Source of the DNA: Phaeosaccion multiseriatum
Taxonomy: Eukaryota; Protista; Ochrophyta, other classes
Assembly (NCBI GenBank): GCA_965112735.1
Contig: OZ218951.1
Location: forward strand, 930,001 to 994,000
Direction: 5' to 3'
DNA: 64,000 nt
In this document: in pieces, positions 9,177 to 53,300 of the stretch
How positions within the stretch are numbered: position 1 is the stretch's first letter
Layout of the letters: each line of letters starts with the position of its first letter
Made by a program: the position numbers and the translations under genes
Notes under the pieces: model-generated
Told to the model about the DNA's origin: nothing
Database searches by the model: none
Seen by the model: the letters and a program-made list of their open reading frames with translations, nothing else

Positions 9177-9223
<47 letters not shown>

Positions 9224-11227
9224 CTGCTGATGATGGTGATGAGAAGGAGTCTCCGTCACCTCGTCGTCCGACACATGCAATAGCACCGTACTCTTCCGCT
9301 GGCGGAGCTCGTCGAGCTGATCCTGAAGCTCCTCGCGACTCTTGCCCGGCTCCGTGGACTGCATCCTCGCCTCCAGCAACATCATCGCTCGGTTAATGCC
9401 GTTGATCTGCCGATGCGGCCACCGAGGGACACCGTACCTCCGACACAGGCGCTTGAGGGTGGTTACCGACACACTGAGATGCTCGGCCGCGTTACGGAGA
9501 GGCACGTCGAAGTACTGCTTCATTCGCTCCAGCGGCACGCGTCGTGAAATATCGTCCAGCGTTTCCCTCTTGGTGGCCTTGACCTTGGCACCCCCTGCCG
9601 CTTTGGCCTTGGGGGATGCGGATGTGATCCTCCTCTTGGTGCTGCCGCTGCTGCCGCTGCCGCCGCTGCAGGAAGGACCGGAAGGGCCCGAGGGGGTGGA
9701 CGGCGCCGATCGCTTTGTGCTGCTTCTGCTCCTGGTGTTGCTGGTGCTGCTGCGGGTGCTGCTGCTAGTGTCTACGCTGTATGCAAACTGCTTCCTCGTA
9801 GTCGGAGGGCGTGCTCCTCCTCCATCAAGGTCGTCTTCTCGGTCCTCCGAGTCATCGGCGTCTGAAGTGTGGTCGCTGGCCCCTCCGCCTCCGGCCTGAG
9901 ATGCATGGGCAAGGGGCAGGATGGGCTCACTCTTGGAGTGCATCTGCTGCTGCTGCTGCTGCTGCTGCTGCTCATGCTGAGGTTCCATACGGTACTCTTC
10001 CTGTATCCGCGGGGGCGGTGCTTCATAGCCCTCCCCCCCCCCCTCTCCTCCTCCTCCTCCTCCTCCTCCTCCTCCTCCTCCTCCTCCTCCTCCTCCTTGC
10101 CCGTGCTGCTCACTGCCACTGCTGCTGGCCGTCTTCTCAAGTCTCTTGGAGGTCCGCGGGTCCTTCTCCCGCTGCAGTCGCTCCTCGTCCCTCCTCTGCT
10201 CCTCCGTCAGCATAGCCCTCACGTCCGCCACACTCTGTCGCTGCCCTTTTTTCTGGTGGAAGTCTGTCGCCCTTCCCTTGTGAGCTATCGACTCCCACAT
10301 GAGAGTCAAGCTATCTTTCCGAATAATTCCACCGTCCACATCCACCTGCCCTCCTCCTCCTCCTCCCGATGATCCGGATCCCCCCGGCCCGTTCGCCCCA
10401 AAGGAGCCGCTACGCCCGAGACCTGACGCTCCTGACCCCCCTGCCCCGCTCGCTCCAAACGACCCAGCACGCCCATGGCCTGATGAACCGGACCCGCCAG
10501 GCCCGCTCGCTCCAAACGATCCTCTACGCCCACTGCGGACCCCCGCTGCGACTCCCCCACCAGTGGGGGCGGGCATGCTCGACACAACCTTCGACCCCAG
10601 TGCATGGTTGGCCTCGGGGCGAGCGTCGGGGCTGATGGGGCCTCCTACCAATGTCTGCACTGCAGGAGGAGTGAGCGGGAGGATGCCCTTGCCGCCGCTG
10701 CCCTTGCTATTCAACTTGCTCGGCTTGTGCTGCTGCTGGTCCACGGTTGGAAAGTGCGGCGCCCCCCCTCCTACGTCCACGCCCACGCCCACGACTTCAG
10801 GCTCCCCGACGTAGTGCAGTCGCTTCGCTCTTCTGTCCGCCAGCTCCTCCTCCTCCGCTACTGCGTCTACTTCTGACGTTGCTGGTGCTTGAGTCACAGG
10901 CACTACTAGTTGCTCCACTGCTGTAAGCACATCTGGTGAGACTTTACCCACTCCATCCTCCTCCTCCTCCTCCTCTTCCTCCTCCCCCGTCTCCACCTTC
11001 ACCTTCTCCTCGCTGGGCTGGAGCCTCCGCCGCTCCCTCTTCTTCAGCATGTGCGGCTGCTGCTTCTGCTTCTGCTCCTGCTCCTCCTCCTGCTGCTGCT
11101 GCTGCGCCACCTCCTCCTTCTCTGTTGTCTTGCTGCCGTCCTTTCCCCCCTTGGTCCGGGTGGTCACTCCCATGCCTTCCGTCTGGTTCGGTTCAATTGT
11201 CCTCATCACAGTGCGAGCCGGTTCCAT
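8198..11227 (-). CDS. RWP-RK domain transcription factor (NIN-like/RKD family), low-complexity Q/H/G-rich
   Basis: Single 1009-aa ORF containing VPLERMKQYFDVPLRNAAEHLSVSVTTLKRLCRRYGVPRWPHRQI (~9400-9540), a canonical RWP-RK motif, followed by a coiled coil. The start codon is uncertain. Confidence 0.88.
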
Positions 11228-32339: not shown

Positions 32340-35300
32340 ATGGATCATGGTGGACGAGGAGGGGCCGATGCCCTAGGAGGAGTGACGCCCGGAGAGACAG
32401 CAGCAGCGGCAGCCGCCACAGGCCGTCCAGCAGCAGGCAGAGGGGATGATGGCCGGAAGACGAAGCCCCTCCTCCTCCCCCGCCACGGCAATGGAAATGA
32501 AGTTTCCAGGGTTGAGGAAGGCCGTCGTAAAGTTCCAACGGGGGGGGTGACGCAAGTCTTGTGGGAGCGAGACTCTCCAGCAGGCGACGAAAAGGAGGAA
32601 CAACGAGGCGGAATCGACGAAGGAGTCGCGACCTCTTCTTCTCTCGCTCCTCTACTGAGGAGGGCTCACGAGGCTGTTGCTGACCTCGGCGACAAGCCCT
32701 TTGCCTTTTGGTACGATGGCAAGGGCAAAGAGGCGGAGAGGTACAGCTTCAGACGCATGTGGGATGAGGTAAGCAACGCAACGACCAAACATTCCGTGGA
32801 GGTGTTGATGCCCTTGCTTGCTCTCTCATGCCGATTCAGCTGCTGCTGGCGTGCTGTAGTCTTGCACCTTAACCCCCCCCCGGTACTCCTACTAGACACT
32901 TTGTGATAATTAACCCAAGATGCGACGTTCTTCTTCTCCCAACCCTGCCTTGTGCTTGCTTCCTCAGGCGGGCAAGATTGCCTACATGCTGCGCGAGGAG
33001 TGGGGCGTGCCCAAGGGCGGCATGGTGGTGCTGTGCTACGGGCCGGGCCTGCATTTCTTCGCCGCCTTCCTGGGCTGCTTCAGAGCAGGTGTGGTGGCGG
33101 TGATGGTGTACCCGCCTGCTCCTCCCCTGTCCAAGTCGCTGCCAAAGATGAGCAAGATCGTGGCGGACTGCAAGCCCATGCTGTGCCTCACCGACTCCAT
33201 CATCGCAGCTGTGCGCAATATGGACAAGGTCAATCTACTCTCGGACTCCCGCAAGCTGTGGCCTGATGACCTCGACTATAAGGCTACAGATGGGGGGCTG
33301 TTCCAGAGCCTCTTCTCCTCCTCATCGTCCTCCTCGTCAGCAAGGAGTTTCAATGAGCTGAGCGTGGCCGAAGAGGACTTGGCCTTCGTGCAGTACACCA
33401 GCGGCTCCACGGGCGACCCCAAGGGCGTCATGGTGACCTTCGGTGCGCTCATGGCCAATGTGTACCTCATCGGCTGCCACCCCGCCACGGGGATGTGCCG
33501 CTTTTGGCCCTCACACAAGGCTGGAGACTCCTCATCAGACCAGCCTGAGGCGAGCCGCAGCGGTCCTATCCAGAGGGCTGCACCAAGTGAGCGGATCCAT
33601 TATATGCCAGCAACGGGCTTCTCGTGGTTGCCCCAGTATCATGTGAGAATAGAGAGGGAAAGTGAGCGAGCGAGAGGAAGTAGAGGCAGGACAGACGAAG
33701 CAAGGGAGGAGAAACGTGGAAACGGCTAGGAACGGAGCGCCAAACCAGCTTGAGGAAGGGGAGAAACGCTGTGCGGTTGGACACCCCTCTGCTATCCTTT
33801 GTGTCTCGTCTTGCCTTTTGCTGTTGCTCACTCGCGCCCCACTCACTACCCTGCCTTCTCTTTCTGTGCTTCTCAGGACATGGGCCTCGTACTCGGCCTC
33901 CTCACCCCCTTCCTGACGGGCATGACTATGCATTACATGTCCCCCGTCAGCTTCATCAAGCGGCCCCTGCTCTGGCTGGAGCTTGTCTCTCGGCACCGCG
34001 TGGAGTGGTCTGTCGCCCCCGACTTCGCCTACGCCCTCTGCGCCCGCTACATGGCCAAGGTGCGCGGCACTCGCAAGGAACCCAAGCTGGATCTGTCTTG
34101 CGTGGTCAGGCTAACGTCGGGAGCCGAGCCAATCCGGGCGGAGACGGTGGAGAGGTTCGAAGGGACCTTCCTGCCTTTCGGCCTCCGGCAGGGGTGAGTG
34201 AGCGTGTGGCACGAGCTATGACTGCGCTTGAGCTCGAGAGACTTGTCCCGACATCCTCCGTGCTCCCCCCTTTTTTCGGCCGGTGAGTGGTTTCTAACCT
34301 CATACCTCGCCCGTGTATGTGCCTCTCTGTGTTTGTGCACTGAGTCGACAGGTGGTTCTCGGCTGCGTACGGGCTCGCTGAGCACGTAGTGTCAGGTAAG
34401 AAGTCTGCACAGAAGGGGGGACGGGTCGAGGCGAAGGGACAGGCGGTGGTGCAGTTAATTCGCTCTCAGTGTAAGAATCGGTCCAGAGGCTCATACACTC
34501 GTCCTCTCGCCTTCCCCACCCCCTTGCACACTTTCCCCAGTCTCCTGGGCCACTGTCCTCGATCGATCGCCTTCTCGTCCCGACCTCACCAGCGTTGGCT
34601 CCCCGAGCGAGAGAGCAGACTTTATGGACATTCGAATCGTCAATCCCGACACCATGGCCGAGGTCAGCGAAGCAGGAGCCATGGGAGAGGTCTGGGTCTC
34701 CTCTCCCTCTGTCGCCGCCGGGTACTGGGGCAAGCCCGAGCTGTCGAAGGAGGTGTTCCAGGCGAAGCTCTCTCTCCAGGGTGGGGCCGGGGGCAGTGAC
34801 AGCAGCTTGTCTCCTCGCCAGTACCTGCGGACAGGTGACTTGGGTTTTGTGGAAGAGGGGCTGCTGTACATCTGCGGCCGCATCAAGGACCTCATCATCT
34901 TCAATGGGGTCAACCACTACCCGCAGGACGTTGAGTTCGCTGTGCAAGAGGCCTCCAGCGCCGTTCGGCAGGGCTGCATTGCGGCCTTCTCCTCCGACGA
35001 GACGGGAGGGGACGGTGTGCTGGAGGTGGTGTTCGAGATCCGCCAAGAGCGAGAGGGCGAGGCCCAGGCAGTGGTGGAGGCCGCTCAGGCCGCCTTGTCG
35101 TCCTCCTTGGGTCTCAGAGCGGCGAAGGTGGTGGCCATCAAGCAGAAGACCATCCCCAAAACCACGAGCGGCAAGATCCGACGGCGGGCGACGAGACAGG
35201 CGCTTCACGCTGGCGAGCTGCACATGGTGCACGAGCTCATCGAGGACCGCGCTACGATGTCACAGGTGCGAGTGAGCGGGAGTGGAGGCCTCTTGCCCAT

Positions 35301-38300
35301 CTCTCCAATCCTTTGCCCCCTTCAGTCTCTGTGCTTTGGTACTTGCCCTTCACAGCCCTTTTCATCCGTGCAGTTGTGGTGAGAGAATCGTCTGCTGAGG
35401 GCTTTGCGTCGAGTCTCACCCCACTTGTCATGCCCATTTCTCCCCCAACCTAAACCGACAGGACTCTCCTCCTGTGAACCTTGCCAGCGTGTGCTCAGCT
35501 CCCGAGGAAAGGGCTTGCTTCGTCGAAGGCGTTGTCCCGGAGGGGAGAGGAGGAGGAGAAGGCGGTCTGGCCATGCGTGCTATGGAGAGCCTCGATAGGG
35601 AGGCAAGGGTGGCCATCATCTTGGAGAAGCTCCTCGAGTTTGCCGTAGAGGTGACGCATAATGGAGATTTGACCGCCGACGACCGCTTCATGGAGGCGGG
35701 CATGACCTCGGTGATGATGGCCGAGCTGGCGGTGATGCTCGAGGACTTTCTGGGCAGCGAGAAGACTGAAGAGTGGAGCGACAAGGATTCTGAGATTGGG
35801 GCCGACGCCCTCTTTGACTATCCGACACCAGCTCTACTCGCAGCTCACCTGGAGACGGTCCTGTTTGGAGAAGAAGAGGAGAACGTCGCTTCCGTTGACG
35901 GACTGCCTCGCTCCATTCCTGGGGTCTCTTCTTCTGACGGTAGCAGCGGCGACATTGCAGTCATTGGGATGGCCTGTCGGTTCCCCGGTGGCTGCAACAG
36001 CCCGGAAGAGTTCTGGGCGAAGCTGTGCAATGAAGAGGACTGCGTCACCGATGCACCCCTTGAGCGAGGCTTGGGAACAGGAGTGAGAGGTGCGTTGCTA
36101 CCCTGTGTCCACGAGGCTTGCAAATGTTAGTCTTAGAGGGCATGGAAGCCTTGCTGGGCGCTTCTTTGCCCGTCTCTGTGCCCCACTCACCCCATTTTGA
36201 ACGCTCCTCCTCTCCCCGTCATGCGAGCAGGTGGCTTCATCGACGGTGTTGAAGCGTTCGACAACGCATTCTTCGGCATGTCCACCGCCGAGGCGGAGGC
36301 CCAAGATCCCAACCAGCGCATCATGCTCGAAGTGGCGTACGAGGCTCTGCACAGAGCCGGCTACGAGGGCCGACGCAGGCTTGAAGGTCACCGAGTTGGC
36401 GTGTTTGTGGGCGCTGCAGGGAGTGACTGGCCCGCTTTGCTGCGTGAGAGCGCGGATGGCGTTCCTCTCAGCGCCTACACGTTGGCAGGGGCAAGCAGAG
36501 CATGTTTCGCTGGCCGCATTTTGCATACACTCGGCCTTGTAGGTCCATGCGAAAGCGTAGATGCGGCATGCTCATCGGCCCTAGTGGCCCTCAGCAACGC
36601 GTGCAACAGTCTGAAACTGAGGCAGTGCAGCTCTGCCGTCGTTGGCGGGGTCAACCTGCTGCTCCATGACCAAGGCTTTGGCGGCCTGGCCAGTGCGGGG
36701 CTTCTGTCGAAGGAAGGGTGAGTGTGCTCCTGCAGCTCTGCATCTATTTTCTTCCTTCCAAAGCGCCCTTTCTCTTCTCTCTGGTCCCTTGCTTGGACAC
36801 TGATCCACCCCGCCCCCCACTCTACTTCCTGTCCCGTCTCCTTCTCCAGGTGCTGCAAATCCTTTGACGCGGCCGGGGACGGCTACGTGCGCAGTGAGGG
36901 CAGCGGGGCAGTCGTGCTGAAGTACCTGCCGGACGCCATCAAGGACGGGGACAACATCCTTGCCGTCATCAAGGCAGCGGCTGTCAGCCACAATGGCGTC
37001 AGCACTTCTCTGTCTGCCCCCAAGGGAGCCGCCCAAGAGAGCTTGGCGAGGAGCGCCCTGCTGCAGGCAGGGTGCGAGGGGAGAGAAGTGGGCTACGTGG
37101 AGGCTCACGCCACGGGAACGGTCATGGGCGACACCATCGAAATGGGTACGTCGAAGGAGGCGAAGGGGGTTAAAAGAGGACCATTCGTGTTGGACCATCC
37201 CTGTCGTTTAGAAGCAGGGCATTCGCGTTGGACCATCATTGTGAAGTCTCTTTTACGTCTCCACTCGAAGAATGATGCTGTGGAGAGAGATATCAAACAT
37301 AAGCTTATTCGTGCCCTCTCTCCCTCCCTCCCTCCCTCCCTCCCTCCCTCCCTCCCTCCCTCCCTCCCTCCCTCCCTCCCTCCCTCCCTCCCTCCCTCCC
37401 TCCCTCCTCCCTCCCTTCCTCCCTCCCTCCCTCCCTCCCTCCCTCCCTCCCTCCCTTCCTCCCTCCCTTCCTCCCTCCCTTTCTCCCTCCCTCCCTCCCT
37501 CCCTCCCTCCCTGCCTCCCTCCCTCCCTCCCTCCCTCCCTCCCTCCCTCCCTCCCTTCCTCCCTCCCTCCCTCCCTCCCTCCCTCCCTCCCTCCCTCCCT
37601 CCCTCCCTCCCTCCCTCCCTCCCTCCCTCCCTCCCTCCCTCCCTCCCTCCCTCCCTTCCTCCCTCCCTCCCTCCCTCCCTCCCTCCCTTTCTCCCTCCCC
37701 CCCCCGCCTCCTTCCCTCCCTCCCTCCCTCCTACCCTCTCTCCCATCCTCCCTCCCTCCCTCCCTCTCTCCGTCCCTCATCCACCTACGCATGAAAGCAC
37801 GTCGCGTGATACTCCTTAGGCGCTCTCAAGGCAGCGTTCACCCCCAACAGGCCTGATGCCTCCCCCCTTGCAGTGGGCACTGTCAAGACTACTCTAGGCC
37901 ACATGGAAGGGGCGTCAGGGATGGCTCAGCTCATCAAGGCCATCTTGGTAGTACAACACCGAGAGGCCCCAGCCAACCTACACCTGAAGGAGATCAACCC
38001 CAACTTGAAGCTGGCGGGCGTACCCGTCACGCTGCCCACCCGAAGGACGCCCCTCTCCTCCCACTGCTCTGACGGCTCGACGCTGCTCGCAGGGGTGAAT
38101 TCCTACGGCGTTGGCGGCTTCAACGCCCACGTCATCTTGGGAAGCTATGGCGGCATGAAGCCCAAAGGCGCAGCAGAGAGAGTGGTCATCCCTTGGCAGG
38201 GGTTCCTCTCGTCACGAGAGTTTCCCCTCCCGAGGAGGGCAATACCCACACACGATTGCGAGGGTCCTGTATCTGCTCCTCTCCCAGCTGGAGACGCCCT

Positions 38301-41300
38301 CTCACAGCTGCGCAAGACTCTCTTTGCGCAATCCCCAGAGGATCGACGCGTTGCTCTCCTGGAAGCGCTCAAGGCGACCGTGCTGAAGTGTGTTGATGCA
38401 GACATGCCCCCGCTGGAGGACAATGTGCCCTTGATGGAGGCAGGCCTGGATTCGATGGCACTCGTGGAGGTGCGGAATCGCCTTCACGCTGACTTGGGGG
38501 TGACAGCCACCGCCGATGTGCTCTTTGAGTACCCCAGCTTGGCGGAGCTGGTGGGCTGGTTGGATGGCGAGGTAATGGGAAGGGCTGCCATAGACCCAAT
38601 GCGAGATTTGCGCTCCACCTCGGCTTCGCCTCAAAGCATGCGAGCTCCGCTGGCGGTGGTGGGCATGGCGTGCCGCTTTCCAGGAGGAGTGACTTCGCCC
38701 CAAGGTTTCTGGAGAATGCTTTGCACGGGATCGGACTGCATCTCTACAGCTCCAGCAGACAGGTGGGGAGGCGGCTCGAAGGAGTGGCGAGGAGGCTTCA
38801 TAGAGGGCGTCCACCTCTTCGACAACATCTTCTTTGGGATTTCGTCAGCGGAAGCGGAAAGCATGGACCCCAACCAGCGCGTGCTGCTGGAGGTGGCCTT
38901 CGAGGCGCTGCACAGGGCAGGCTGTGACAAGAGCAAACTCCGCAAGAGCGAGACAGGGGTCTTCATCGGCTGCGCTGGAAGCGATTGGCTGCAGGCCAAA
39001 GCAAGCCAAGGAGCTGGCGAGGCGAGCGAGGGCGTGTACACGGCGTCAGGAGCCTCCATGTCGAATTTGGCCAACCGAGTTTCCTACGCGCTGGGGTTGA
39101 AGGGGCCGAGCTCAACTGTAGACACGGCGTGCTCCTCTTCCTTGGTCGCCCTGGACAACGCCTGCAGCAGCCTGCGATTGGGCAAGTGTGACACAGCTGT
39201 GGTCGGTGGAGTGAACCTGCTTCTCAGCGAGGCGCCCTTCAAGCTCCTTTCCTCAGGAGGGTTTCTCTCGCCAGACGGGTGAGTGCTTGAGTGTGCGTGA
39301 GGGAGGAGGAGAGAGGGGGGGGGGGGCAGGGAGGAAGGAAGGAGGAGAGGGAGGGAGGGAGGGAGGGAGGGGAGGGAGGAAGTCAATGAGTATGATGCTC
39401 TCCAGGTGAAGGCCCGATATGGTAGTCGGTAGGCACCTGGTCATGCACCACTGTTTCGTTCAGGGAGGTAGAGTAAGAACCTTAAATCGCCCCTTCTTAT
39501 CTAAATCTTCCCTGTTTCCCCCTTGCTTCCTCACTCTCAAGGCACTGTAAAACATTTGACAAGGCCGCCAACGGCTACGTCAGAGGCGAGGGGTGCGGAG
39601 CAATCGTGGTGAAGCGCCTAGACGACGCCCTTGCCAACGACGATGAGGTGCTGGCTGTCCTGCGAGGCTCGGCTGTGAACCATAATGGGCCCACCGCGCG
39701 GATGACGGCTCCAAACCCTGGTGCTCAAAAGCAGCTCATCACAGACGCCTTTATCGACGCCGGGCTATCTCCAAACGACGTTAGCTTCGTCGAGGCGCAC
39801 GGCACGGGCACGTCTCTCGGCGACCCCATCGAGATGAGCGCTCTCAGAGGAGTATTCGCCCCCCACCGCGATGAAGCGAAGCCTTTGATCGTGGGGGCGC
39901 TCAAGACAAACATCGGGCACTTGGAGGGAGCGGCAGGGATTGCCGGACTCATCAAAGCCGTCCTGGTGGCGCAGCACAAGACCGCTCCACCCAATCTTCA
40001 CTTCATCGAGCCAAACCCAGAGCTCGACATGGAGGGAATTGCAGTCCTGTTCCCATCTTCCATGACCCCTTTACCCACCAGCTCCGATGGATCTGTGGTG
40101 GTCGGGGTGAGCTCCTTCGGATTTGGAGGCACCAACGCCCACGCACTGCTCAGCAGCTTCGGACCAACGTTGGTTGAGAGGGGTGAGGTCTTGCTGCAGC
40201 TGGATGGGCAGCAAAGGAAGAAGATATCGCCGCCGGTGACGTTCTTGTTCACTGGACAGGGCTCGCAGTACGTGGGCATGGGCAGGGAGCTGTACGAGAA
40301 GGAGGGCGTGTTCCGCGAGTGCGTGCAGCGGTGCAGTACGCTGCTCATGGAGCGGGCTTGGTTGGACAAGTCTGTGGTGGAGCTCATGTACCCAGCCGCC
40401 GCTGAGGATGGGGAGGAGGAGGAGGAGGAGGAGACTGCACAAGCGCTGCTGAAGGAGACACGCTACTACCAGCCATGCCTGTTTGTGCTGGAGTACGCCC
40501 TGTGTGAGCTGTGGAAGTCGGAGGGCGTGGAGCCGTCCATGGTGATGGGCCACAGCCTGGGCGAGGTGGTGGCGGCGTGCGTGGCCGGCGTCATGTCGAT
40601 GGAGGACGGGCTGATGCTGTCCGCCAAGAGAGGGGCCGCCATGCAGGCCTGCCCCGAGGGCAAAGGAGTGATGTTCGCAGTAAGGGCAGGCAAGGAGGCG
40701 ACTCTGGCAAGCATCGACGCTGTGGGGGCGGCAGGCGAGGTGGTGCTGGCGTCGTCGAATGGACCGAGCACGAGCGTGATCTCTGGAGCTCGCAGCGCTG
40801 TGGACAAGATGGTGGAGAAGCTCACGGCGGATGGGGTGGGCTGCAAGGCCCTGGAGGTGCCGCACGCCTTCCACTCTCCTCTCATGGAGCCCGCTGTACT
40901 TGCGCTGGAGGAGGTTCTGAGGCAGGTGTCATTGAGCGCCCCACGCATTCCCCTGGTGTCTAACGTGACGGGTGAGGTAGTGAGAGAGGAGGAGGTGACG
41001 CAGGCGACGTATTGGGTGCAACACATGCTGTCGCCAGTGCTGTTCGCAGAAGGCATCCATACGGTGGTGGAGCACTGGATGGGAGACGGGAGGGGGGCTG
41101 ACCTGAGCATCGTTGAGGTGGGCCCCAGCCCTGTGCTGAGCAGTATGGGGGCCAAGTGCGAGCGTCGCGAAGGGCTGGTGTGGATCTCTTCTCTCACGCG
41201 CGGGAAGAGCTCCGAGGATTCGTTTCGAGCAGCTCTGAGCACAGTGCAGCAGCCAGAGAGTAAGGGTGAGGAGCACATCCTGTTCCCAACGCGCAAAGCC

Positions 41301-44300
41301 TTTCCTTGGTACACAGCGCGAGCCACAGCAGCACCTCAGCCGCAGAGTGAAGCTGAGCAGGGCCCGCTCTATGTTGTTGAGTGGGAGGCGGTGGAGGTGC
41401 CCACGGCTTCGCAGCAGGCTTCGCTGACCGGCCGCCTTCCGTGGCTCGTCGTGATTCCCCAGGCAGCTGAAGAGCAGCACGCTTCGAACAACCACAGAGC
41501 CTTGGAAGCTATCCGAAGCGCGGCGACAGCAAGTGGTGTGGAGGTGCACGTGGTGGAGGCGGTCGGTTCAGACGCGCAGCCCCGTGGGGCCCATCTCTTC
41601 TACTTGACGTCAGCAACGGGCTCTGCTACCGATGGGGCAACCCACTTTGTGCAAACTGTACACAGCTTAGACGGGGACGCGGCCGTGATGCCGATCACGG
41701 TGGTGACAACGGGTGTGTACAGCGGTGCTGGTTGGCAGGACAGCTGGGCAGTGGGACTGGTGAGAAGCGTGCGCCTGGAGCGGGGCGACCTCGATGTGAA
41801 CCACATCGACCTTGAGTATGCCATGTATCCACAGTCTGAGGATGCACGACCTAGAGTAGAGAACATGGAAGCCCAAGCTATCTCCCAGGCTGTGACGCTG
41901 GCTGCAGGAGCCCGCGACGGCGGCCGAGGCGTTGACCTGCTGGTTCGAGAGTGTGAGATCCTCGCTCCGAGGCTGGTGCCCAGCACACTCCATTTGACGC
42001 CGGTAGGAGTCGATCGCTTCACGTGCAGAGAGGATGGGACCTACCTGATCAGCGGTGGTCTGGGGGGGCTGGGCCTGGTGACGGCGAATCACTTGGTCTC
42101 CCAGGGCGCTCGACACTTGCTCCTCCTGTCTCGAAGCGGCCGGGCGGCGGAGGAAGTTTCAGAGCTGTGGCAGGCCCTGCAGAGCATGGAGAGTGTCACC
42201 GCTATGGCCGTGGCCTGCGATGTGTCCGACATGAGCCAGCTTCGAGGCGCGGTAGCCAACGCTTTGGTGGGGCTGCCTCGTGTTCGGGGTGTGATCCACG
42301 CAGCGGGGGCTCTAGATGACCGCAAGTTGGCTGGGCAGACCGATCAGAGCGTGCGGAATGTTTTCGCACCAAAGCTTCACGGGGCTTGGAATCTGCATGA
42401 GCTGTCGCTTGAGTGGGCCGAGAGGGAAGAGAACTTAGACTTCTTCGTGTCCTATTCATCTACGGCTGGGACGCTTGGTAACATCGGACAGACGAATTAT
42501 GCCGCAGCCAACTCCGCGCTTGATGGTCTGATGCGCTACCGCCGGCAGCAGCTCAAGCTGGCGGGCACCAGCATTCAATGGGGGCCCTTTGGTGACGCGG
42601 GCATGGCAGCAAAGTCTACGACGCTACATAGTCTTCTCGAGACGGCCGGAGTGGGCCTGATCTCACCGGCGCTGGGTATGAAGGCTCTGGATGCCGTCCT
42701 TGCAAGTCAAGCGCAAGCCAACGGGCAGGAGGTTGCCGTCATGCCGGCCATGAGGTGGGGCAGATTTCGAGCGAGCTTGGACCCGGTGCACAGCGATTTC
42801 CTCGGGCAGTTGACGGACCGCTGGGAAAGTGGTGAGGCGATAAAGGGCTACAACGTCAATGCCGAGGTGCGGGAGGAGCTCCTGCACTTGCCGGAGTCAG
42901 CACGGCGGGAGAGGATCGAGCAAGTCCTGACGGGTATGGCAGTCGAGTGTGTTGGCGAGGACTTCACCTTGGTAGCAGCGATGCCCTTGATGGAAGCCGG
43001 GCTCGATTCAATGGCGTCCGTGGAGTTTCGCAAGCGAATCGAGGCCTGGTGTGGTGTCACCGTTTCGAATGGTGCCTTCTTCTCGTATCCATCGGTGTCT
43101 GCAATGGCTGCGTGGCTTGAGGCCCAGATTCTTGAGGTGCCGGATGATGCAGAGGGCGGTAAAGCAGTACTGACAGGACGGCACTTGTCCTCGGACTCTC
43201 GAGCCCCCATCGCTGTGGTGAGTATGGCGTGTCGCCTCCCCGGCGGAGCCAACAGCCCGGAGCAGTTCTGGTCGATAATGTGCGAGGGCAGAGACTGCAT
43301 CACGGCAGCGCCACACGACAGGTGGGAGAGTAAGGCGGGCGAGCTGCAGCTGCAGGGCGGGTTCATCGAGGGCGTGGAGATGTTCGACAATGCCTTCTTT
43401 GGCATCAGTGCTGCCGAGGCAGAGGTAATGGACCCCAATCAGCGCCTCATGCTGGAGGTGGCCTTCGAGGCCCTCTATCGCGCGGGCCACAGCAAGAGCA
43501 GCCTGCGGGGCAGCAACACAGGCGTGTTTGTAGGCTTGTCGGACACGGACTGGGGCTTCGTGGCAGGAGATGCCGGTGCTCAGAGCGCCTACGGCGGAAT
43601 GGGTCTGACGGCTTCGAACATTGCGAATCGCGTATCCTACACTCTGGGTCTCTGCGGCCCCAGTGCGTTGCTGCAGACAGCATGCTCGTCGTCCCTGGTG
43701 GCTCTGGACGCTGCTTGCAGCAACCTCCGCCTGGGCAAGTGCGACTCGGCGGTGGTCGGTGGCGTGAACCTGCTGCTCGGGAAGAGCACCTTTCAGTCAT
43801 TGTTTGCGGGGACCTTCCTCTCCTCCGACTGGTACGTGGCACCGGCTGCTCCACACCATGTGTTGTTTTTCTTCTCCTGTGATGTGTGATGTACTCACCT
43901 CGACTTCGATTCCTGTAGTTCCCTTAATACTCCGCTCACACTTCTTTGTGCTACTGCTGCCCTCCACAAACGCGAGGTGCTTATGTGGAAATGAGGGAGT
44001 GCCGCCGACCTCTGTGTGCATTTTCTCAAGCTGCGTACTATTCAATCGCTGACATCACTTCCTCCATTCCGATTGACCTTCCCAGGCGCTGCAAGACGTT
44101 CGACGCCTCGGCCAACGGATACGTGCGTGGTGAGGGGTGCGGCGCCGTTGTGCTGAAAAGCCTGGATGACGCCCTCGCTGCCGGAGACACGGTCCTCGCT
44201 GTGATTGAGGGCTGCGTCGTCAACCACAATGGAGCCAGTGCCCGTCTGACGGCCCCCAGCCCCGCCGCCCAGCAGAGACTCATCGAGGCGACGCTGCGTG

Positions 44301-47300
44301 AGGCCGGTCGGGAGGGGTCCGAAGTACGCATCCTGGAGGCACACGGCACGGGAACCTCGCTAGGCGACCCCATCGAGATGAGCGCACTGAAGGCCACGTA
44401 CGGAAAGAACCGCAACGAGTCTTTCCCGCTGGTGGTGGGTGCGTTGAAGACCAACATCGGCCATCTGGAGGGTGCGGCGGGCGTTGCTGGGCTCATCAAG
44501 GCCGTCTTGATGCTGCAGCACCGCGCTGTGCCGGCCAACCTTCACCTCGAGAGCGTCAACCCGGAGCTGGACATGGACAGCTTCCACGTGCAGCTCCCAT
44601 CGAAGATGGTGGAGCTGGAGGACGAGGGAGAGGTGTTGGTGGGGGTGAGCTCGTTCGGAGCGGGGGGAACGAATGCACACGTGCTGCTGAAGAGCTATGG
44701 GGAGAAAAATGAGGGTGCGCCAGGCCCTAATGCCCATCAAGCAGAGCCTCCAGTGGCGTTTGTGTTCACCGGACAGGGCTCGCAGTACGTGGGCATGGGC
44801 AGGGAGCTGTACGAGAAGGAGGGCGTGTTCCGCGAGTGCGTGCAGCAGTGCAGTACGCTGCTCATGGAGCGGGCTTGGCTGGACAAGTCTGTGGTGGAGC
44901 TCATGTACCCTGCCGCCGCTGAGGACGGGGGGGAGGAGGAGGAGGAGGAGACTGCACAAGCGCTGCTGAAGGAGACACGCTACTGCCAGCCGTGCCTGTT
45001 TGTGCTGGAGTACGCCCTGTGTGAGCTGTGGAAGTCGGAGGGCGTGGAGCCGTCCATGGTGATGGGCCACAGCCTGGGCGAGGTGGTGGCGGCGTGCGTG
45101 GCCGGCGTCATATCGCTGGAGGACGGGCTGATGCTGTCCGCCAAGAGAGGAGCCGCCATGCAGGCCTGCCCCGAGGGCAAAGGAGTGATGTTCGCAGTAA
45201 GGGCAGGCAAGGAGGCGACTTTGGCAAGCATCGACGCTGCAGGGGGGGCAGGCGAGGTGGTGCTGGCGTCGTCGAATGGACCGAGCACGAGCGTGATCTC
45301 TGGAGCTCGCAGCGCTGTGGACAAGGTGGTGGAGAAGCTCACGGCGGATGGGGTGGGCTGCAAGGCCCTGGAGGTGCTGCACGCCTTCCACTCTCCTCTC
45401 ATGGAGCCCGCTGTACTTGCGCTGGAGGAGGTTCTGAGGCAGGTGTCATTGAGTGCCCCACGCATTCCCCTGGTGTCCAACGTGACGGGTGAGGTGGTGA
45501 GAGAGGAGGAGGTGACGCAGGCGACGTATTGGGTGCAACACATGCTGTCGCCAGTGCTGTTCGCGGAAGGCATCCATACGGTGGTGGAGCACTGGATGGG
45601 AGACGGGAGGGGGGCTGACCTGAGCATCGTTGAGGTGGGCCCCAGCCCTGTGCTGAGCAGTATGGGGGCCAAGTGCGAGCGTCGCGAGGGGCTGGTGTGG
45701 ATCGCTTCTCTCACGCGCGGGAAGAGCTCCGAGGATTCGTTTCGAGCAGCTCTGAGCACAGTGCAGCAGCCAGAGAGTAAGGGCGAGGAGCACATCCTGT
45801 TCCCAACGCGCAAAGCCTTTCCTTGGTACAAGCCTCCGCTGGCGTTTATACCAAGTGGTGAGGTGGTCCTGGAGGGAGACGGAATGCGGCTCGCCAGCCC
45901 CTTCCCCCCTCACCTCAAGGGCCTTCTCAAGGACCATGCCGTCAACAATGTGGTGATCATTCCGGGGGTGACGTACATTGAAGTGGGCGTCGTCGCTGCT
46001 CTAGGAGGAAGACAGCTTGGGGTGCAGCAGCAGGTAGTCCTGCAAGGAGCCAGCTTTGTGGTTCCACTGGAGATTGAGGGTTTCCAACAGGTCGGCACGG
46101 ACCAGGCGCAAGGCCGCCATACAATGGTTTGTGCGGGGATGAGTGCCCTTCACGCGCCAGATGGAAGCATGCAGTTCTTCGGAGGTGCCACGGGCGACAA
46201 GGGCACCACGGCTAGACTAAAGCACGTGTCTGTCACGGAGCGAAACACGGGGCGTGCTTCGCTGCACGTGGAATCCATTCGAGCTAGAGTTGGCGAGCAT
46301 GACGTATCGAGTGAGGTCTATAAGTCATTCGTAGACGCCGGCTTCCAGTATGGCCCCCGCTTTCAGCGGACTCGCCACATGTACGGCGGGGTCGGAGAGG
46401 TTCTGTCGGTCGTTTGTGCCATGGATGAGGAGCTGTGCGAGCCGTGGGAGATGAAGGGCTTTACTCTGCACCCCGCGGTGCTGGACAATGCTACCCATAC
46501 CATCATGCAAGCGCTGCCAAGGAAGCTGCTCAAGGAGGGGGGGGGCTCTCCATTCCTACCTGCTGGCTTTGACGAGGTGGTCGTTTCCGCCTCCATGACG
46601 GGAAAGAACGTGTGGGTGCACACGGTGCTGAGTGAGGTCCAGTCAGTGGCGGACAGCGCAAAGTTCGATGTGGTGATTGCAGACTTCGACAGCAAAGAGG
46701 TGCTCGTGGAGATGCGGGGCTTCCGCGTGCAGCGGGCGAGGGGCTTTGTGCGCGTCAGCCCCGTTCGTCGTGCAACGTACGCATTGGAGTGGCAGGTTGC
46801 TGAGCCCTCTGCACAGGAGGAGGCCCCTGGTAGCGATACTGACGCTACTGAGGCGGCGGCGCCACAGAAGTGGATGGTGGTGATTCCACAGGACGAGTGG
46901 GAGGAAGAGATTTCAATCATTGCTGCAGTGCGGCGCTGCGTTCCGGAGAACGTGCACGTACACACTCGATATGGGGGGATGGACGCCTCCTGGGATGATG
47001 GTGCTCTTCTTCTTGGACAGGAGGAGTGGGCTCGCGTCTTGTACGTGCTGATACCCGGAGCTGGCGAAGAAGACGCAGAAGGGGGCCAGCAAGCACGAGC
47101 GGCCTACGCCCTGATGACTCTACTCAGGAGCCTGTCCACTGCGTCGAGTGTGCCGCTGACGGTTTTGACGAGGGGTGTCCAAAGCGGCGAGGACTGGCGT
47201 GACAGTTGGGTGACTGGGCTGGTGCGGACTGCGAGGGTGGAGCACCCCTCCCTGCAGATTGGCGTGGTGGACCTGAGCGACAAGAAGGCCCAAGACAGCG

Positions 47301-50300
47301 AGGTTGCCTTAGGTTTGGCCTTCCCTGCCAAGACAGAAGATGTTTGGGTACACGATGGTCAGTGCTGGGCCCCTCAGCTCATACGTCAGCCCCTGCAGCT
47401 TCCCTTCTCACTTGACTTGAAGGCAAGAGGCAGCATCGCCACTGCCTTTTCCCTTTGCGATGATGTTGATGTTGGCAAGCATCGGCCTCTCGACCCGACT
47501 GGCAGCTATGTGGAGGTGGCGGTGAGGGCCGTGGGGCTTAACTTCTGGGACGTGCTGAATGTGCTGGACATGTATCCTGGCGACCCTGGAGATCCTTGTT
47601 CCGAGTTCGCCGGGGAGGTGATCAGAACAGGAGGCAGCTCGCGCTTCCGTGTCGGTGATAAAGTATATGGCTTCGCGGACGGAGGATGTTTGCGCAGCCA
47701 TCTGGTGACGGAGGACGCGTGCCTGGCCGTGATGCCGGCGGCGCTGAGCTTCGAGCAGGCCGCTGCACTTCCCACCGTGTACTTGACGGTAGTGAAGGCC
47801 TTCCACGACCTCAAGGCTGGAGAGAAGGTGTTGATTCACGCCGCATCGGGCGGTGTGGGCCTTGCCGCTGTTCAGTACGCTCAGCGGGTCGGCGCAGAGG
47901 TGTACGCTACTGCCGGTGCTGCTGTGAAGCATGACTTCCTCCGGAGCTTGGGAGTGGAGCACATTGCGTCATCGCGAGACGCAGAGGCGTTCATGCAGTC
48001 CATGGGCGAGATGAAGGTGGACGTGGTGCTCAACTCTCTGAGTGAAGACTACATTCCCTTCTCATTGGACGTGCTAAGCGACGGTGGTACATTTGTTGAG
48101 ATTGGCAAGCGAGGCGTGTGGAGTCACGAGCAGATGCGCACCGCCCGGCCCGATGTGAGGTACGAGCTACTGACACTGGATAGCATGATTGAGGCTGACT
48201 TCTTAGCTCATGAGCCGGGCTGGATCAGTGGCGGGCTGCAGCATCTTGCTGGAGACTGCATGTCTGGGAATGTGAAGCCCTTACGGACCATGCCATTTGA
48301 CATGAGGGAGGATACTCAGAAGGCCATGGCACTCATGAGCCAAGCGAAGCACATCGGCAAGGTGGTACTAACCAACCCCTTGTATGGTGTACCAGTGGTG
48401 TCCGATGGCACGTACGTCATCAGCGGCGGTCTGGGGGCTCTCGGCCTCGTCACGGCCCAGCACCTCGCGTCGAGGGGCGCTCGTCACTTGGTGCTGCTGT
48501 CGAGGAGTGGGAAGATCGCCAATAGCATGACTGAACAGTGGCAGCAGCTTCAAAATATCGTAGAGCTGACTATCCATACTCCTACTTGCGATGTTGCTGA
48601 CGCTGATGCGCTTCGGACTTGCCTGGAAGGCGTGCTGCCTCTGCTCCCCCCTGTACGCCGTGTGGTGCATGCTGCCGGGGTGCTGGATGATAAGCTGCTG
48701 GGAGAGCAGACGGTGGAGAGCATGATGAACGTCTTCCGACCCAAGGTGCAGGGGGCGGTGAACTTACACGAGCTCTCGTTGGCGTGGCCGAAGGAGGAGG
48801 GGCGCTCTCCCGGCCTTGATTTTTTCTTGTGTTTCACATCCATGGCCGGAGTACTGGGCAACGCTGGACAGGCCAACTACGCTGCGGCGAATGCGGCTGT
48901 GGACGGGCTGATGCGGCACAGGCGACACCTCGGGCTTGCAGGGACATCATTGCAGTGGGGGCCGTGGGCTGACGTTGGTATGGCCGCCCAACTCGATATC
49001 GTTCAAAAGCAGTTGGAGCTTGCGGGTGTGGGCACGGTGTCAGCTGAGCTGGGCATGGCTGCCTTAGATGCCGCTGCGATGTCGTCAGCGTCCGTGGGTG
49101 ATGTGGCTGTCCTGCCTGGCATGGACTGGGGCAAGTTTGCAGGCAGCTTGGGGGTGTCCAGTAGATCGCCCCTGCTGTCAGGGCTTGTCTCAGCAGCAAC
49201 AGGCGCGTCCAGCAACACCAAACTCAACAATGAAGTGCGAGAGGCGCTCTTGAGACTGCCCCCTGGTGAACGACAGCAATCCGTGCGATTGGCGGTGCTT
49301 GATATGGCCAAGGACCTCCTTGGGGATGGTGCCGAAGAGCTGGACGAGAACACTCCTTTGATGGAAGCAGGTCTTGACTCTTTGTCAACAGTGGAGCTGC
49401 GCGGCCAGCTGCAGGCTCGCTTCGGGGTTGTGGTGACCACTGATGTGCTCTTCGCGTATCCCACGGTAGCGGCGCTGGCAGTGTGGATCGAAGCGGAGGT
49501 GCTTGGAGAGATAGAGGAACCCTCTGGCAGTGGCTCTGCGGCAATCGATGCTGAAGCGCACCGCACTGACTCAAGGGCGCCGCTGGCCGTCGTCGGTGTC
49601 GCCTGTCGCTTCCCTGGAGGGGTTAAGAACCCCGAGGACTTCTGGGCTATGCTCTGTGCAGGGACAGACTGTATTGGAGCCAGCCCTCTTGGTCGCTGGG
49701 CCGAGGAGGGTCAGAAGCAGTGGCAAGGGGGCTTCATTGATGGAGTGGAGGCTTTTGACAACACCTTCTTCGGCATCTCTGCGGCCGAGGCGGGTGCCAT
49801 GGACCCTCATCAGCGCGTCATGCTGGAGGTGGGGTACGAGGCTCTGCACAGGGCGGGATACCGCAAGGATACACTACATGGTAGCAACACCGGTGTGTTC
49901 GTGGGTGCGTCCGGCAGCGACTGGAGCTCAATGGTAGACGATTCGAACAAGGGTGCGTACTCCGGGCTGGGCATATCCAATGCGAGTCTGGCAAATCGGA
50001 TGTCTTACGTGCTGGGCCTCGGAGGGCCGAGCATGACTGTCGACACGTTGTGCTCGTCGTCTTTCGTGGCACTGGAAGGGGCCTGCAGCAGCTTGCGGCT
50101 GGGCAAGTGTGACATCGCCTTGGTGGGAGGCGTCAACTTGCTGCTGGGTACACAGTCGTTCGAGACCGTCGCCGAAGCAGGTTTCCTGAGTCCTGACTGG
50201 TAAGTGCGTGTCTCTTCTGTGTGGGTGGGAGCTTGTTCTTGGGGCCACTATGAGAGCGAGATCAAAAGGCCCAAGCTGTCTGAAAGGCCCCTGTTGCGGA

Positions 50301-53300
50301 TGGATTACCTCTTGTCTGTTCTTCACTTTTGCTAACCCTCAATTCCTCATGGTCAGGCGCTGCAAGACGTTCGACGCTGCGGCCAACGGTTATGTTCGAG
50401 GTGAGGGCTGCGGCGCCGTGGTGCTGAAGCGACTGGACGATGCACAGACCAATGGCGACCACATCCTTGCTGTCGTCAATGGCTGTGCTACGAACCACAA
50501 CGGGAGAAGTTTGCGCTACACTGCCCCGAGCCCTTCTGCTCAGCAGCGTCTGGTGGAGCAGGCACTGGCGGAGGCCGGCTTGAGCGGTCTGGAGATTGAT
50601 TACGTGGAGGCACACGGCACCGGGACTTCTCTCGGCGACCCCATCGAGATGAGTGCTTTGAGAGCCGTGTATGGCCATGGCCGCGAGGAAGCTCGGCCCC
50701 TGGTGGTTGGGGCGGTGAAGACTAATATCGGGCATCTAGAGGCTGCGTCCGGAATCGCTGGCCTCATCAAAGCTCTGCTGGTCCTTCAGCATGGATCTGC
50801 TCCCCCCAATCTCCACATGAAGAAGCTCAATCCGGAGCTTTGTTTGGATGGTTTTCCGGTGACTTTGCCGTCTGCCATGGTGCCACTAAGTGCCAGGGAT
50901 GGGGAGAGGCGTACTGCTGGTGTCAGCTCCTTCGGTGCGGGAGGAGCCAACGCCCATGTGGTGCTCAGCAGCTTCGGACCGACTCTAGTAGAGGAGAGCG
51001 AGAGCGGAGCCTTGCTGCAGCTTGATGTGCAGCAAAGCAAGAAGAGATCGCCGGTGACGTTCTTGTTCACTGGACAGGGCTCGCAGTACGTGGGCATGGG
51101 CAGAGAGCTGTACGAGAAGGAGGGCGTGTTCCGCGAGTGCGTGCAGCAGTGCAGTACGCTGCTCATGGAGCGGGCTTGGCTGGACAAGTCTGTGGTGGAG
51201 CTCATGTACCCTGCCGCCGCTGAGGACGGGGGGGAGGAGGAGGAGGAGGAGACTGCACAAGCGCTGCTGAAGGAGACACGCTACTGCCAGCCGTGCCTGT
51301 TTGTGCTGGAGTACGCCCTGTGTGAGCTGTGGAAGTCGGAGGGCGTGGAGCCGTCCATGGTGATGGGCCACAGCCTGGGCGAGGTGGTGGCGGCGTGCGT
51401 GGCCGGCGTCATATCGCTGGAGGATGGACTGATGCTGTCCGCCAAGAGAGGAGCCGCCATGCAGGCCTGCCCCGAGGGCAAAGGAGTGATGTTCGCAGTA
51501 AGGGCAGGCAAGGAGGCGACTCTGGCGAGCATTGACGCTGCAGGAGGAGCAGGCGAGGTGGTGCTGGCGTCGTCGAATGGACCGAGCGCGAGCGTGATCT
51601 CTGGAGCTCGCAGCGCTGTGGACAGGGTGGTGGAGAAGCTCACGGCGGATGGGGTGGGCTGCAAGGCCCTGGAGGTGCCGCACGCCTTCCACTCCCCTCT
51701 GATGGAGCCCGCTGTACGTGCGCTGGAGGAGGTTCTGAGGCAGGTGTCCTTCAGCGCCCCACGCATTCCCCTGGTGTCCAACGTGACGGGTGAGGTGGTG
51801 AGAGAGGAGGAGGTGACGCAGGCGAAGTATTGGGTGCAACACATGCTGTCGCCAGTGCTGTTCGCGGAAGGCATCCATACGGTGGTGGAGCACTGGATGG
51901 GAGACGGGAGGGGGGCTGACCTGAGCATCGTTGAGGTGGGCCCCAGCCCTGTGCTGAGCAGTATGGGGGCCAAGTGCGAGCGTCGCGAAGGGCTGGTGTG
52001 GATCTCTTCTCTCACGCGCGGGAAGAGCTCCGAGAATTCGTTTCGAGCAGCTCTGAGCACAGTGCAGCAGCCAGAGAGTAAGGGCGAGGAGCACATCCTG
52101 TTCCCAACGCGCAAAGCCTTTCCTTGGTACACAGCGCGAGCCACAGCAGCACCTCAGCCGCAGAGTGAAGCTGAGCAGGGCCCGCTCTATGTTGTTGAGT
52201 GGGAGGCGGTGGAGGTGCCCACGGCTTCGCAGCAGGCTTCGCTGACCGGCCGCCTTCCATGGCTCGTCGTGATTCCCCAGGCAGCTGAAGAGCAGCACGC
52301 TTCGAACAACCACAGATCCTTGGAAGCTGTCCGAAGCGCAGCGACAGCAAGTGGTGTAGAGGTGCACGTGGTGGAGGCGGTCGGTTCAGACGCGCAGCCC
52401 CGTGGGGCCCATCTCTTCTACTTGACGTCAGCATCGGGCTCTGCCACCGATGGGGCAATCCACTTTGTGCAAACTGTACAGAGCTTAGACGGGGACGCGG
52501 CAGTGATGCCGATCACGGTGGTGACAACGGGTGTGTACAGCGGTGCTGGTTGGCAGGACAGCTGGGCCGTGGGACTGGTGAGAAGCGTACGCCTGGAGCG
52601 GGGCGACCTCGATGTGAACCACATCGACCTTGAGTATGCCATGTATCCACAGTCTGAGGATGCTCGACCTAGAGTAGAGAACATGGAAGCCCAAGCTGTC
52701 TCCCAGGCTGTGACGCTGGCTGCAGGAGCCCGCGACGGCGGCCGAGGCGTTGACCTGCTGGTTCGAGAGAGTGAGCTCCTCGCTCCGAGGCTCGTGCCCA
52801 GCACACTCCATCTGACATCGGCAGGAGTCGATCGCTTCACGTGCAGAGAGGATGGGACCTACCTGATCAGCGGTGGTCTGGGGGGGCTGGGCCTGGTGAC
52901 GGCGAATCACTTGGTCTCCCAGGGCGCTCGACACCTGCTCCTCCTGTCTCGAAGCGGCCGGGCGGCGGAAGAAGTTTCAGAGCTGTGGCAGGCCCTGCAG
53001 AGTATGGAGAGTGTCACCGCTGTGGCCGTGACCTGCGATGTGTCCGACATGAGCCAGCTTCGAGATGCTGTAGCCAGCGCTTTAGTGGGCCTGCCTCATG
53101 TTCGGGGCGTGGTCCACGCAGCGGGGGTGAATGGCGCAAAGAGAATGTTGTCGGGCGAGACGGAAGAGAACGTGCGAAATGTCTTTGCCGCCAAGGTCCA
53201 GGGAGGTTGGAATCTCCACGCGCTGTGCCTTGAGTGGGCGGCGAGCGGCAGGAAGGAGATCGACTTCTTCGCATCGTACTCATCGACCTCCGCTTTGCTT

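Follow-up and report, generated by a model that had tools for sequence, protein, structure and literature searches.

Near-identical acyltransferases without a ketosynthase-acyltransferase linker subdomain, and a first module without an acyltransferase, in a hybrid polyketide synthase-nonribosomal peptide synthetase gene of the alga Phaeosaccion multiseriatum

We analyzed a 64,000-nucleotide stretch of the genome of the ochrophyte alga Phaeosaccion multiseriatum (GenBank assembly GCA_965112735.1, contig OZ218951.1, positions 930,001 to 994,000 of the forward strand; hereafter the window, with positions counted from its first letter) and found a single large gene on the + strand, running from about 32.9 kb to the window end and broken by short GT..AG introns, that encodes a hybrid of a modular polyketide synthase (PKS) and a nonribosomal peptide synthetase (NRPS). 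Pfam matches on the long exons gave the domain order FAAL-ACP-KS1-ACP-[KS2-AT-KR-ACP]-[KS3-AT-DH-ER-KR-ACP]-[KS4-AT-KR-ACP]-(C-A-T)n, where FAAL stands for fatty acyl-AMP ligase, ACP for acyl carrier protein, KS for ketosynthase, AT for acyltransferase, KR, DH and ER for ketoreductase, dehydratase and enoylreductase, and C, A and T for condensation, adenylation and thiolation domains. The subject of this study is the way in which the ATs are built into the gene: the three ATs are nearly identical and follow their KSs without the usual linker subdomain, while the first module has no AT at all. Searches, trees and the fold were each made on single exons.

The loading region opens with a FAAL-like adenylation domain spread over several exons (32920..35382; Pfam AMP-binding, AMP-binding_C_2 and AMP-dom_DIP2-like on the open reading frames [ORFs] 32920-33729 and 34624-35382), followed by a loading ACP, ACP0 (35627..35852; PP-binding, residues 52-126 of ORF 35474-36130). 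KS1 (35951..38139) is divided among four exons at approximately 35951-36075, 36230-36718, 36848-37144 and 37873-38139. Its last intron (37145-37872) is filled by a long, imperfect microsatellite whose units measure 8 and 12 nt (37235-37800); the repeat reads (SLPP)n in one frame and thereby gives a spurious 365-codon ORF at 36722-37819. Module 1 is completed by a post-KS segment with neither linker subdomain nor AT (38140..38373) and by ACP1 with its GLDS motif (38374..38562; PP-binding, residues 168-230 of ORF 37873-39282).

Module 2 consists of KS2 (38644..40151; N-half 38644-39279, GT..AG intron 39280-39536, C-half 39537-40151 ending in NAHALL), a KS-to-AT tether (40152..40241) that overlaps the first bases of a repeat block, the AT2 cassette (40229..41317), made of a malonyl-type AT (GHSLGE, HAFHS) and the post-AT motif [11 protein letters not shown], and a KR and ACP region (41318..43125; catalytic part of the KR at about 42036-42590, ACP at about 42978-43118). 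In module 3, KS3 (43206..44689; N-half to about 43829, an intron, C-half about 44087-44689) is followed by the AT3 cassette (44746..45833), which continues into the DH, and by the DH, ER, KR and ACP (45875..49480; Pfam PS-DH, ADH_N/ADH_zinc_N, KR and PP-binding). Module 4 comprises KS4 (49580..50966; N-half to 50197, intron about 50198-50357, C-half to 50966), the AT4 cassette (51047..52135) and a KR and ACP region that is a near-copy of that in module 2 (52136..53942). The NRPS part (54105..64000) is made of repeated C-A-T modules, 95-98% identical over long stretches, and extends past the window end; between 54800 and 64000, the repeats have a period of about 3.72-3.75 kb and an identity of 89-98%, falling to 75-80% around 59883-60404. 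All these features lie on the + strand.

All four KSs keep the Cys-His-His triad in the motifs xACSS, EAHxTGT and KTxxGH; in KS1, these read DAACSS, EAHATGT and KTTLGH. An intron interrupts each of the four KSs at the identical codon position (LSPDG|RCKTFDA), which argues that the modules multiplied inside a eukaryotic genome.

From the end of KS1 through ACP1 and into KS2, the sequence is one unbroken ORF (37873-39282) with no AT. KS1 ends in NAHVIL (38122-38139); 12 residues follow, then ERVVIPWQG (38176-38202) and directly after it FLSSREFP (38203-38226), with the ACP beginning about 55 residues beyond the motif, and the linker subdomain that KSs of trans-AT synthases (those loaded by free-standing ATs) retain as a flanking element is absent. 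A preliminary description of this DNA, made from the letters alone, had given module 1 as a KS end, FLSSREFP and an ACP without an AT, and this layout was confirmed. It had also taken FLSSREFP as the counterpart of the motif that follows the other ATs; motif comparison favored the adjoining ERVVIPWQG, which matches the post-AT RKAFPW better. We considered and rejected the reading of VVIPWQG as a relic of the first AT strand (V-x-F-x-F-T-G-Q-G), and thereby as proof of AT loss, because the stretch is far closer to the motif (E/D)RK(F/L)FPWQ found in AT-less modules of Chromera. A hidden exon encoding an AT, which would have changed the picture, was not found in the 64 kb: tblastn with the AT returned exactly three copies. 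ATs are thus integrated in modules 2-4 only and not in every extending module. With its C-H-H ketosynthase intact, module 1 must, on present evidence, be served by an AT sited elsewhere, in agreement with the original proposal that it is loaded from outside the module.

In modules 2, 3 and 4, we counted 30, 23 and 31 residues between the NAHxxL that ends the KS and the F(L/V)FTGQGSQ that starts the AT, bearing out the short spacing noted at the outset. In a direct alignment, the distance from KS end to AT start was 23 residues (query positions 183 to 206) against 115 in CurL 4mz0 (461 to 576). To place these values, we mapped where the KS ends and the AT starts in about 270 homologues retrieved by the searches; of their 677 KS-to-AT junctions, 666 measured 70-160 residues and 11 were shorter than 50. 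The Pfam family KAsynt_C_assoc matched at profile positions 1-46 of 111 only, a part that corresponds to the final KS strands. Neither of the two linker models (PF22621 and PF22336, CurL-like_PKS_C and the RhiE-like KS-MAT linker) had a match in the window ORF even at E<=1; a typical bacterial homologue, used as a control, showed the full-length KAsynt_C_assoc and both linker models. In an AlphaFold model of the exon 39537-41420 (mean predicted local distance difference test [pLDDT] score 83.6), the C-half of the KS and the AT were confident, and the last KS strand (residues 200-207) and the first AT strand (234-238) were separated by 26 low-confidence residues (pLDDT about 40-44) and by no folded subdomain. 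Every junction falls within a single open frame, and these ORFs are 1427-2212 codons long. Linker-like coding sequence was not found elsewhere in the window by tblastn with five bacterial linker subdomains (best E = 0.3), a weak test given that linkers diverge fast. Spacing, Pfam models and the predicted structure of the KS C-half and AT thus agree with the earlier claim that the linker subdomain is missing, and we regard its absence from the modules as true. Each AT is followed by the post-AT motif, which has its counterpart after KS1; the N-half of the KS is not part of the AlphaFold model, in which docking of the motif on the KS is therefore not visible.

The DNA of the three ATs (40229-41317, 44746-45833 and 51047-52135) is 96.8-97.9% identical, with 0.056-0.082 synonymous substitutions per site (dS) and 0.010-0.018 nonsynonymous substitutions per site (dN). 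The KS pairs are 55-68% identical in DNA and 49-73% in amino acids, and their proportion of synonymous differences (pS) is 0.56-0.80, that is, saturated (dS above 1). The contrast drawn in the preliminary description between almost identical ATs and diverged KSs therefore stands. In the comparison with module 3, near-identity is confined to the AT: the block shared by modules 2 and 3 is exactly the AT with the post-AT motif (40229-41317 = 44746-45833). It reaches further in modules 2 and 4, which are near-identical from about 40230 to about 42260 and again over 42675-43000, taking in the KR and ACP regions (about 97%). Between these blocks lies a diverged patch (42260-42670 versus 53080-53490, 60-68% identity) over the catalytic part of the KR, which suggests selection against homogenizing that piece.

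The 50 sites that vary among the three ATs form a mosaic, with runs in which different pairs agree; over nine consecutive sites at 40330-40599, for example, AT3 equals AT4 and AT2 differs. Such a mosaic points to repeated gene conversion across the whole gene, sparing the KSs, and supports the proposed spread of one AT sequence over the three AT positions, by recent, repeated events. The homogenization is gene-wide, with KR, ACP and C-A-T modules at 95-98%, and not specific to the ATs.

The edges of the AT3 block are informative about what preceded the conversion. At the 3' edge, identity stops exactly past the Trp-Tyr codons of the post-AT motif, a limit forced by the end of homology because a DH follows in module 3 and a KR in modules 2 and 4. 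At the 5' edge, the first 25 or so nucleotides encode VAFVFT in module 3 and VTFLFT in modules 2 and 4: 6 of the 14 AT3-specific differences fall in the first 25 of 1,089 nt and 5 in the next ~1,060 nt (binomial P about 4e-7), and the remainder of AT3 is 97-98% identical to AT2 and AT4. AT-less modules have no equivalent of this first strand, which belongs to the AT proper, so the diverged AT codons retained there show that module 3 already had a diverged AT of its own before it was overwritten.

In database comparisons, the AT was placed with cis-AT PKSs, in which the AT is part of the module: its bit scores were 261 for CurL, 160-189 for other cis-AT PKS ATs, 130 for FabD, 117 for PksD and 97 for DisD. 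By this ranking, it is of the cis-AT PKS type and not of the FabD or free-standing trans-AT type. CurL matched with 180 bits in the KS and 261 in the AT, and the best matches of both domains were of the cis-AT kind. GHSxG, HAFH and a carboxylate-binding Arg form the established malonyl signature. The window ATs have GHSLGE, (P/L)HAFHS and the conserved Arg as invariant columns in the alignment with relatives, and with these Ser, His and Arg motifs intact, all three are predicted to load malonyl units.

A protein search that used the KS-AT portion of the 1427-residue ORF as query returned bacterial two-module proteins only (up to 47% identity), and one with the AT segment found proteins of Vitrella (P0279 in our numbering of the homologues) and Chrysoparadoxa (P0312). 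An exhaustive search of representative proteins recovered single unbroken matches across the KS-AT junction in two PKSs of Chromera velia, in the proteins P0124 and P0267 described below and in a few bacterial proteins. The linker-less junction and the motif R/H-K-x-F/W-P-W are shared by Chromera velia, Vitrella brassicaformis and Chrysoparadoxa australica, whose ATs are 36-42% identical to those of the window. In Vitrella, one genomic ORF (L001:9560-11386) covers the end of the KS, a tether of 28 residues and the AT without a break, and in Chrysoparadoxa, the whole gene consists of one exon, so that the short junction does not stem from faulty gene models. In Chromera, AT-less modules are in the majority and read KS end, about 20 residues, W-(E/D)-R-K-(F/L)-F-P-W and DH; in the module with an AT, the order is KS end, about 25 residues, AT, W-M-H-K-A-W-P-W and DH. 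The window modules follow the same plan, with R-K-A-F-P-W after each AT and E-R-V-V-I-P-W after KS1.

The KS phylogeny grouped KS1-4 of the window with seven Chromera KSs, P0124 and P0267, apart from 54 bacterial KSs, with 99% support in the Shimodaira-Hasegawa-like approximate likelihood ratio test (SH-aLRT). Within this group, AT-less and AT-bearing KSs were sisters three times: KS1 with KS2-4 of the window (99), KS3 with KS1 and KS2 of the Chromera protein P0266 (98), and within P0267 (100). The presence of an AT thus changes among the related modules of one and the same protein. The four window KSs were each other's closest relatives. Since the linker-less junction recurs with diverged ATs in lineages as distant as Chromera, Vitrella and Chrysoparadoxa, the architecture is old, and we conclude that the linker-less state is a shared character of a family spanning alveolates, an ochrophyte, the window alga and at least one bacterium. 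Other short junctions in bacteria (Nocardiopsis P0218, P0240/P0213 and P0016) sit among ordinary linker-bearing relatives in both the KS and the AT tree, from which it follows that the linker has been lost several times independently with the AT retained.

Two members of the KS group came from unexpected sources. P0267 (JGI metagenome 3300027325, contig Ga0209186_1000314, 2152-15645) is a 4497-residue intron-free NRPS-PKS in a bacterial-looking neighborhood of helix-turn-helix regulators, ACPS, a thioesterase and a DNA methylase. It has a 20-residue KS-AT tether as well as AT-less modules, its KSs group with the linker-less protist family, and it may be a bacterial relative of that family or its donor. 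P0124 (deposited as Physeter catodon XP_023973534.1) has four near-identical KS-AT-KR-ACP modules with 36-residue tethers and also groups with the protist family; we suspect a contaminant of the sperm whale assembly, or a transfer.

Taking these results together, we consider the gene to be a eukaryotic, intron-containing hybrid PKS-NRPS belonging to an old, protist-centered family of linker-less cis-AT synthases, with its ATs under concerted evolution and its first module AT-less; we put the probability of this reading at roughly two in three. The simplest history is that the ATs of modules 2-4 are old residents undergoing homogenization and that module 1 represents the empty state. The ancestor of the family would have had a cis-AT module that lost its linker subdomain, after which AT cassettes would have been lost, and possibly moved, through recombination between modules with homologous flanks. 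AT-less modules such as module 1 would then have arisen by precise loss of the cassette, an easy step because both flanks are homologous between modules.

Several points weigh against this reading. A close orthologue was not found by word-index and exhaustive representative protein searches, the best match being about 51% identical, to Chromera, and the history of module 1 is therefore not directly readable. As the exhaustive search was ranked by summed score, giant bacterial PKSs fill its list and single-module relatives below about 900 bits cannot appear in it, so that closer relatives may exist unseen. Both trees come from quick searches: the KS tree was built from 161 columns and 68 rows of the single exon of the N-half, and in the AT tree (91 rows), the 11 ATs of the linker-less group fell on one side of a branch with a weak support of 40. 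The phylogenies called for by the preliminary description thus yielded a firm KS clade mixing AT-bearing and AT-less modules and a poorly supported AT grouping. Both trees are unrooted and contain neither trans-AT KSs nor FabD and trans-AT outgroups, which limits what they say on deep gain versus loss of the AT in the family. The exon structure is based on GT..AG ends and on reading-frame continuity with homologues, and the AlphaFold model, with a predicted template modeling score (pTM) of 0.59 and the N-half of the KS left out, is uninformative about domain placement. The loading of ACP1 is conjectural, too: this ACP may be malonylated by an AT of the same megasynthase, most likely AT2 because ACP1 must dock on the KS2-AT2 didomain to pass on the chain, and less likely by a free-standing AT.

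The alternative that survives best is a version of AT acquisition set in deep time: the family ancestor lost linker and AT together and re-acquired a cis-AT-type AT once, before chromerids, ochrophytes and this alga diverged, with the AT later moving between modules by recombination. A single deletion reaching from the end of the KS to the motif after the AT would account for the joint loss, AT-less modules predominate in Chromera, the AT state toggles between sister KSs, and the weakly supported single AT group fits one acquisition as well as it fits inheritance. Such a history requires, however, that a foreign AT was inserted precisely and in frame behind the KS end and ahead of the motif; KS and AT both resemble those of cis-AT PKSs, as co-inheritance predicts, and in the bacterial cases named above, the linker is lost alone and the AT stays. 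We regard it as improbable, at perhaps one in six.

The preliminary description had suggested that the gene may be a snapshot of a trans-to-cis transition; on that view, the line was until recently AT-less and trans-AT-like, one malonyl AT entered a module, and copies of it then went to two more. The AT cassettes are indeed near-identical on old KSs, their borders against module 3 are sharp and match those of the domains, module 1 represents the empty state next to the same motif, and most modules of the Chromera relatives are AT-less. The 3' edge of AT3, however, is forced by the change from KR to DH, and the diverged AT-specific codons at its 5' edge place an AT there before the overwrite. 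The same junction is found with diverged ATs in other phyla, the homogenization is not AT-specific, the AT is of the cis-AT PKS type, and publications on algal PKSs favor the direction from cis to trans. What the edge of AT3 shows and how the architecture is distributed in relatives weigh most in our rating of a recent insertion as quite unlikely, and the transition proposed for this locus is not borne out. An artefact of assembly collapse, mis-joined repeats or misread introns behind the near-identical ATs or the missing linker is hardly credible, for although repeat-rich genes are error-prone in assembly and the Vitrella relative has an N-gap flanked by duplicated AT sequence, the three AT copies differ at 50 mosaic sites in three different, fully open reading contexts, the junctions lie within unbroken ORFs of 1427 codons or more (up to 2212) and the same junction occurs in independent genomes.

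Within the family reading, the R-K-x-Φ-P-W motif is probably a KS-docking remnant of the post-AT linker, in which case the AT would be a cassette looped out between the KS C terminus and the motif. A bolder extension, which we hold to be possible but doubtful, is that the AT is a self-contained loop-out cassette that recombination between modules can add to or remove from any of them and that an embedded, linker-less AT can serve neighboring AT-less modules within its own megasynthase. If true, the gene would be a natural experiment, with one AT in three module contexts beside an empty site, and would offer nature-validated boundaries for AT swaps and a structurally new KS-AT arrangement. The natural edges of the exchanged cassette, just inside the first AT strand and just past the Trp-Tyr codons of its terminal motif, can help to guide the engineering of AT swaps.

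From the domain order, the FAAL-like domain would put a fatty acid on ACP0, and KS1 would condense it with malonyl-ACP1. Modules 2-4 would extend the chain by three further C2 units, left in the β-hydroxy, fully reduced and β-hydroxy state in turn, and the NRPS part would add amino acids, giving a lipopeptide-like product.

The closest known systems are the PKS/fatty acid synthase (FAS)-like enzymes of chromerids (Chromera Cvel_19857 and Cvel_6161, and a KS-AT-DH-ER-KR locus of Vitrella), which belong to the same KS clade (99%) as the window gene. Both have short KS-to-AT tethers (28-40 residues in the chromerids) without a linker subdomain, the R/H-K-x-F/W-P-W motif past the AT or straight after the KS in AT-less modules, a mixture of AT-less and AT-bearing modules, and near-identical sister modules; KS identity between them is about 50% and AT identity 36-42%. 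The chromerid proteins have one AT among several AT-less modules and, in the matches seen, no NRPS part, whereas the window gene has an AT in three of its four modules and a long NRPS. In Vitrella (CDMY01000231.1, our L001, 10001-16468), a run of N separates two near-identical AT-coding stretches. The annotated 461-residue 'malonyl-CoA:ACP transacylase' of Vitrella is a fragment, from KS end through AT to DH start, of a larger PKS; the next gene model carries on with AT-DH-ER-KR-ACP, and the gene after it codes for KR, ACP, reductase and sulfotransferase domains.

Among apicomplexans, TgPKS2 of Toxoplasma gondii has been described as having shorter KS-AT linker regions than bacterial enzymes, with low similarity, and two of its ATs are active with malonyl-CoA (PMC9301873). 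By this published description, it resembles the window gene as a protist modular PKS with short KS-AT linkers and differs from it in having neither a FAAL start nor an NRPS tail. The architecture itself is therefore known already: public chromerid proteins show it, and it has been mentioned in passing for TgPKS2. Mixtures of cis-AT and AT-less modules in protist PKSs are known from dinoflagellates and chromerids (PMC5725682; PMC7464705), and Shelest et al. argued that algal PKS ATs were displaced from cis to trans (PMC4661987). Our results argue that the coexistence of cis-AT and AT-less modules in algae reflects an old architecture with AT turnover and not a transition caught in the act.

According to reviews, cis-AT modules conserve the linker subdomain, about 100 residues long, the KSs of trans-AT systems retain it, and all solved KS structures of both types contain it (PMC11907408). 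Canonical cis-AT synthases such as CurL and DEBS share with the window gene the order of the reductive domains and a post-AT element ending in Trp, but keep the linker subdomain of about 100 residues, which the intron-containing window gene lacks. Bacterial trans-AT and mixed cis/trans PKSs, like the mixed PKSs of dinoflagellates, are comparable to the window gene in its module 1, which has no AT and must be loaded in trans or by a neighboring AT; unlike the window KSs, bacterial trans-AT KSs keep the subdomain as a flanking or docking element, and a synthase of the pure trans-AT type has no integrated ATs, in contrast to the three ATs of cis-AT type found here. A structural element seen as a constant of both cis-AT and trans-AT modules is thus dispensed with by a whole protist family. 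In a limited literature search, we found no explicit description of a complete absence of the linker subdomain or of the shared R-K-x-Φ-P-W motif, which is no proof of novelty. The window gene is an especially clean example of this known but little-studied kind, with three intact near-identical ATs in different reductive contexts, one empty site and long open exons, and is of moderate interest for the question of how KS and AT function as a pair when the linker is missing, and for where ATs may be exchanged.

The concerted evolution of the ATs also has a bacterial parallel. Within single bacterial assembly lines, sets of ATs are kept at 92-98% DNA identity by gene conversion (PMC8256042), and in GRINS and other bacterial cases of AT concerted evolution (PMC8256042; PMC4256081), the remaining parts stay diverged and KR, DH and ER are converted too, much as in the window. 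The window gene differs from the bacterial GRINS synthases in being a eukaryotic nuclear gene, and has a positive GC skew of about 0.12-0.20 over its whole length. It provides a eukaryotic case of concerted evolution of megasynthase domains that resembles the one known from Streptomyces.

The GC skew is steadily positive (0.08-0.20) along the coding strand of the megasynthase at 38000-64000 and fluctuates near zero or below in the upstream 38 kb. Neighboring ORFs in that upstream part contain a CBM_4_9 domain (2112-3764, + strand), an RWP-RK domain within a 1009-codon ORF (8198-11227, - strand) and a SAP domain (22802-25489, - strand).

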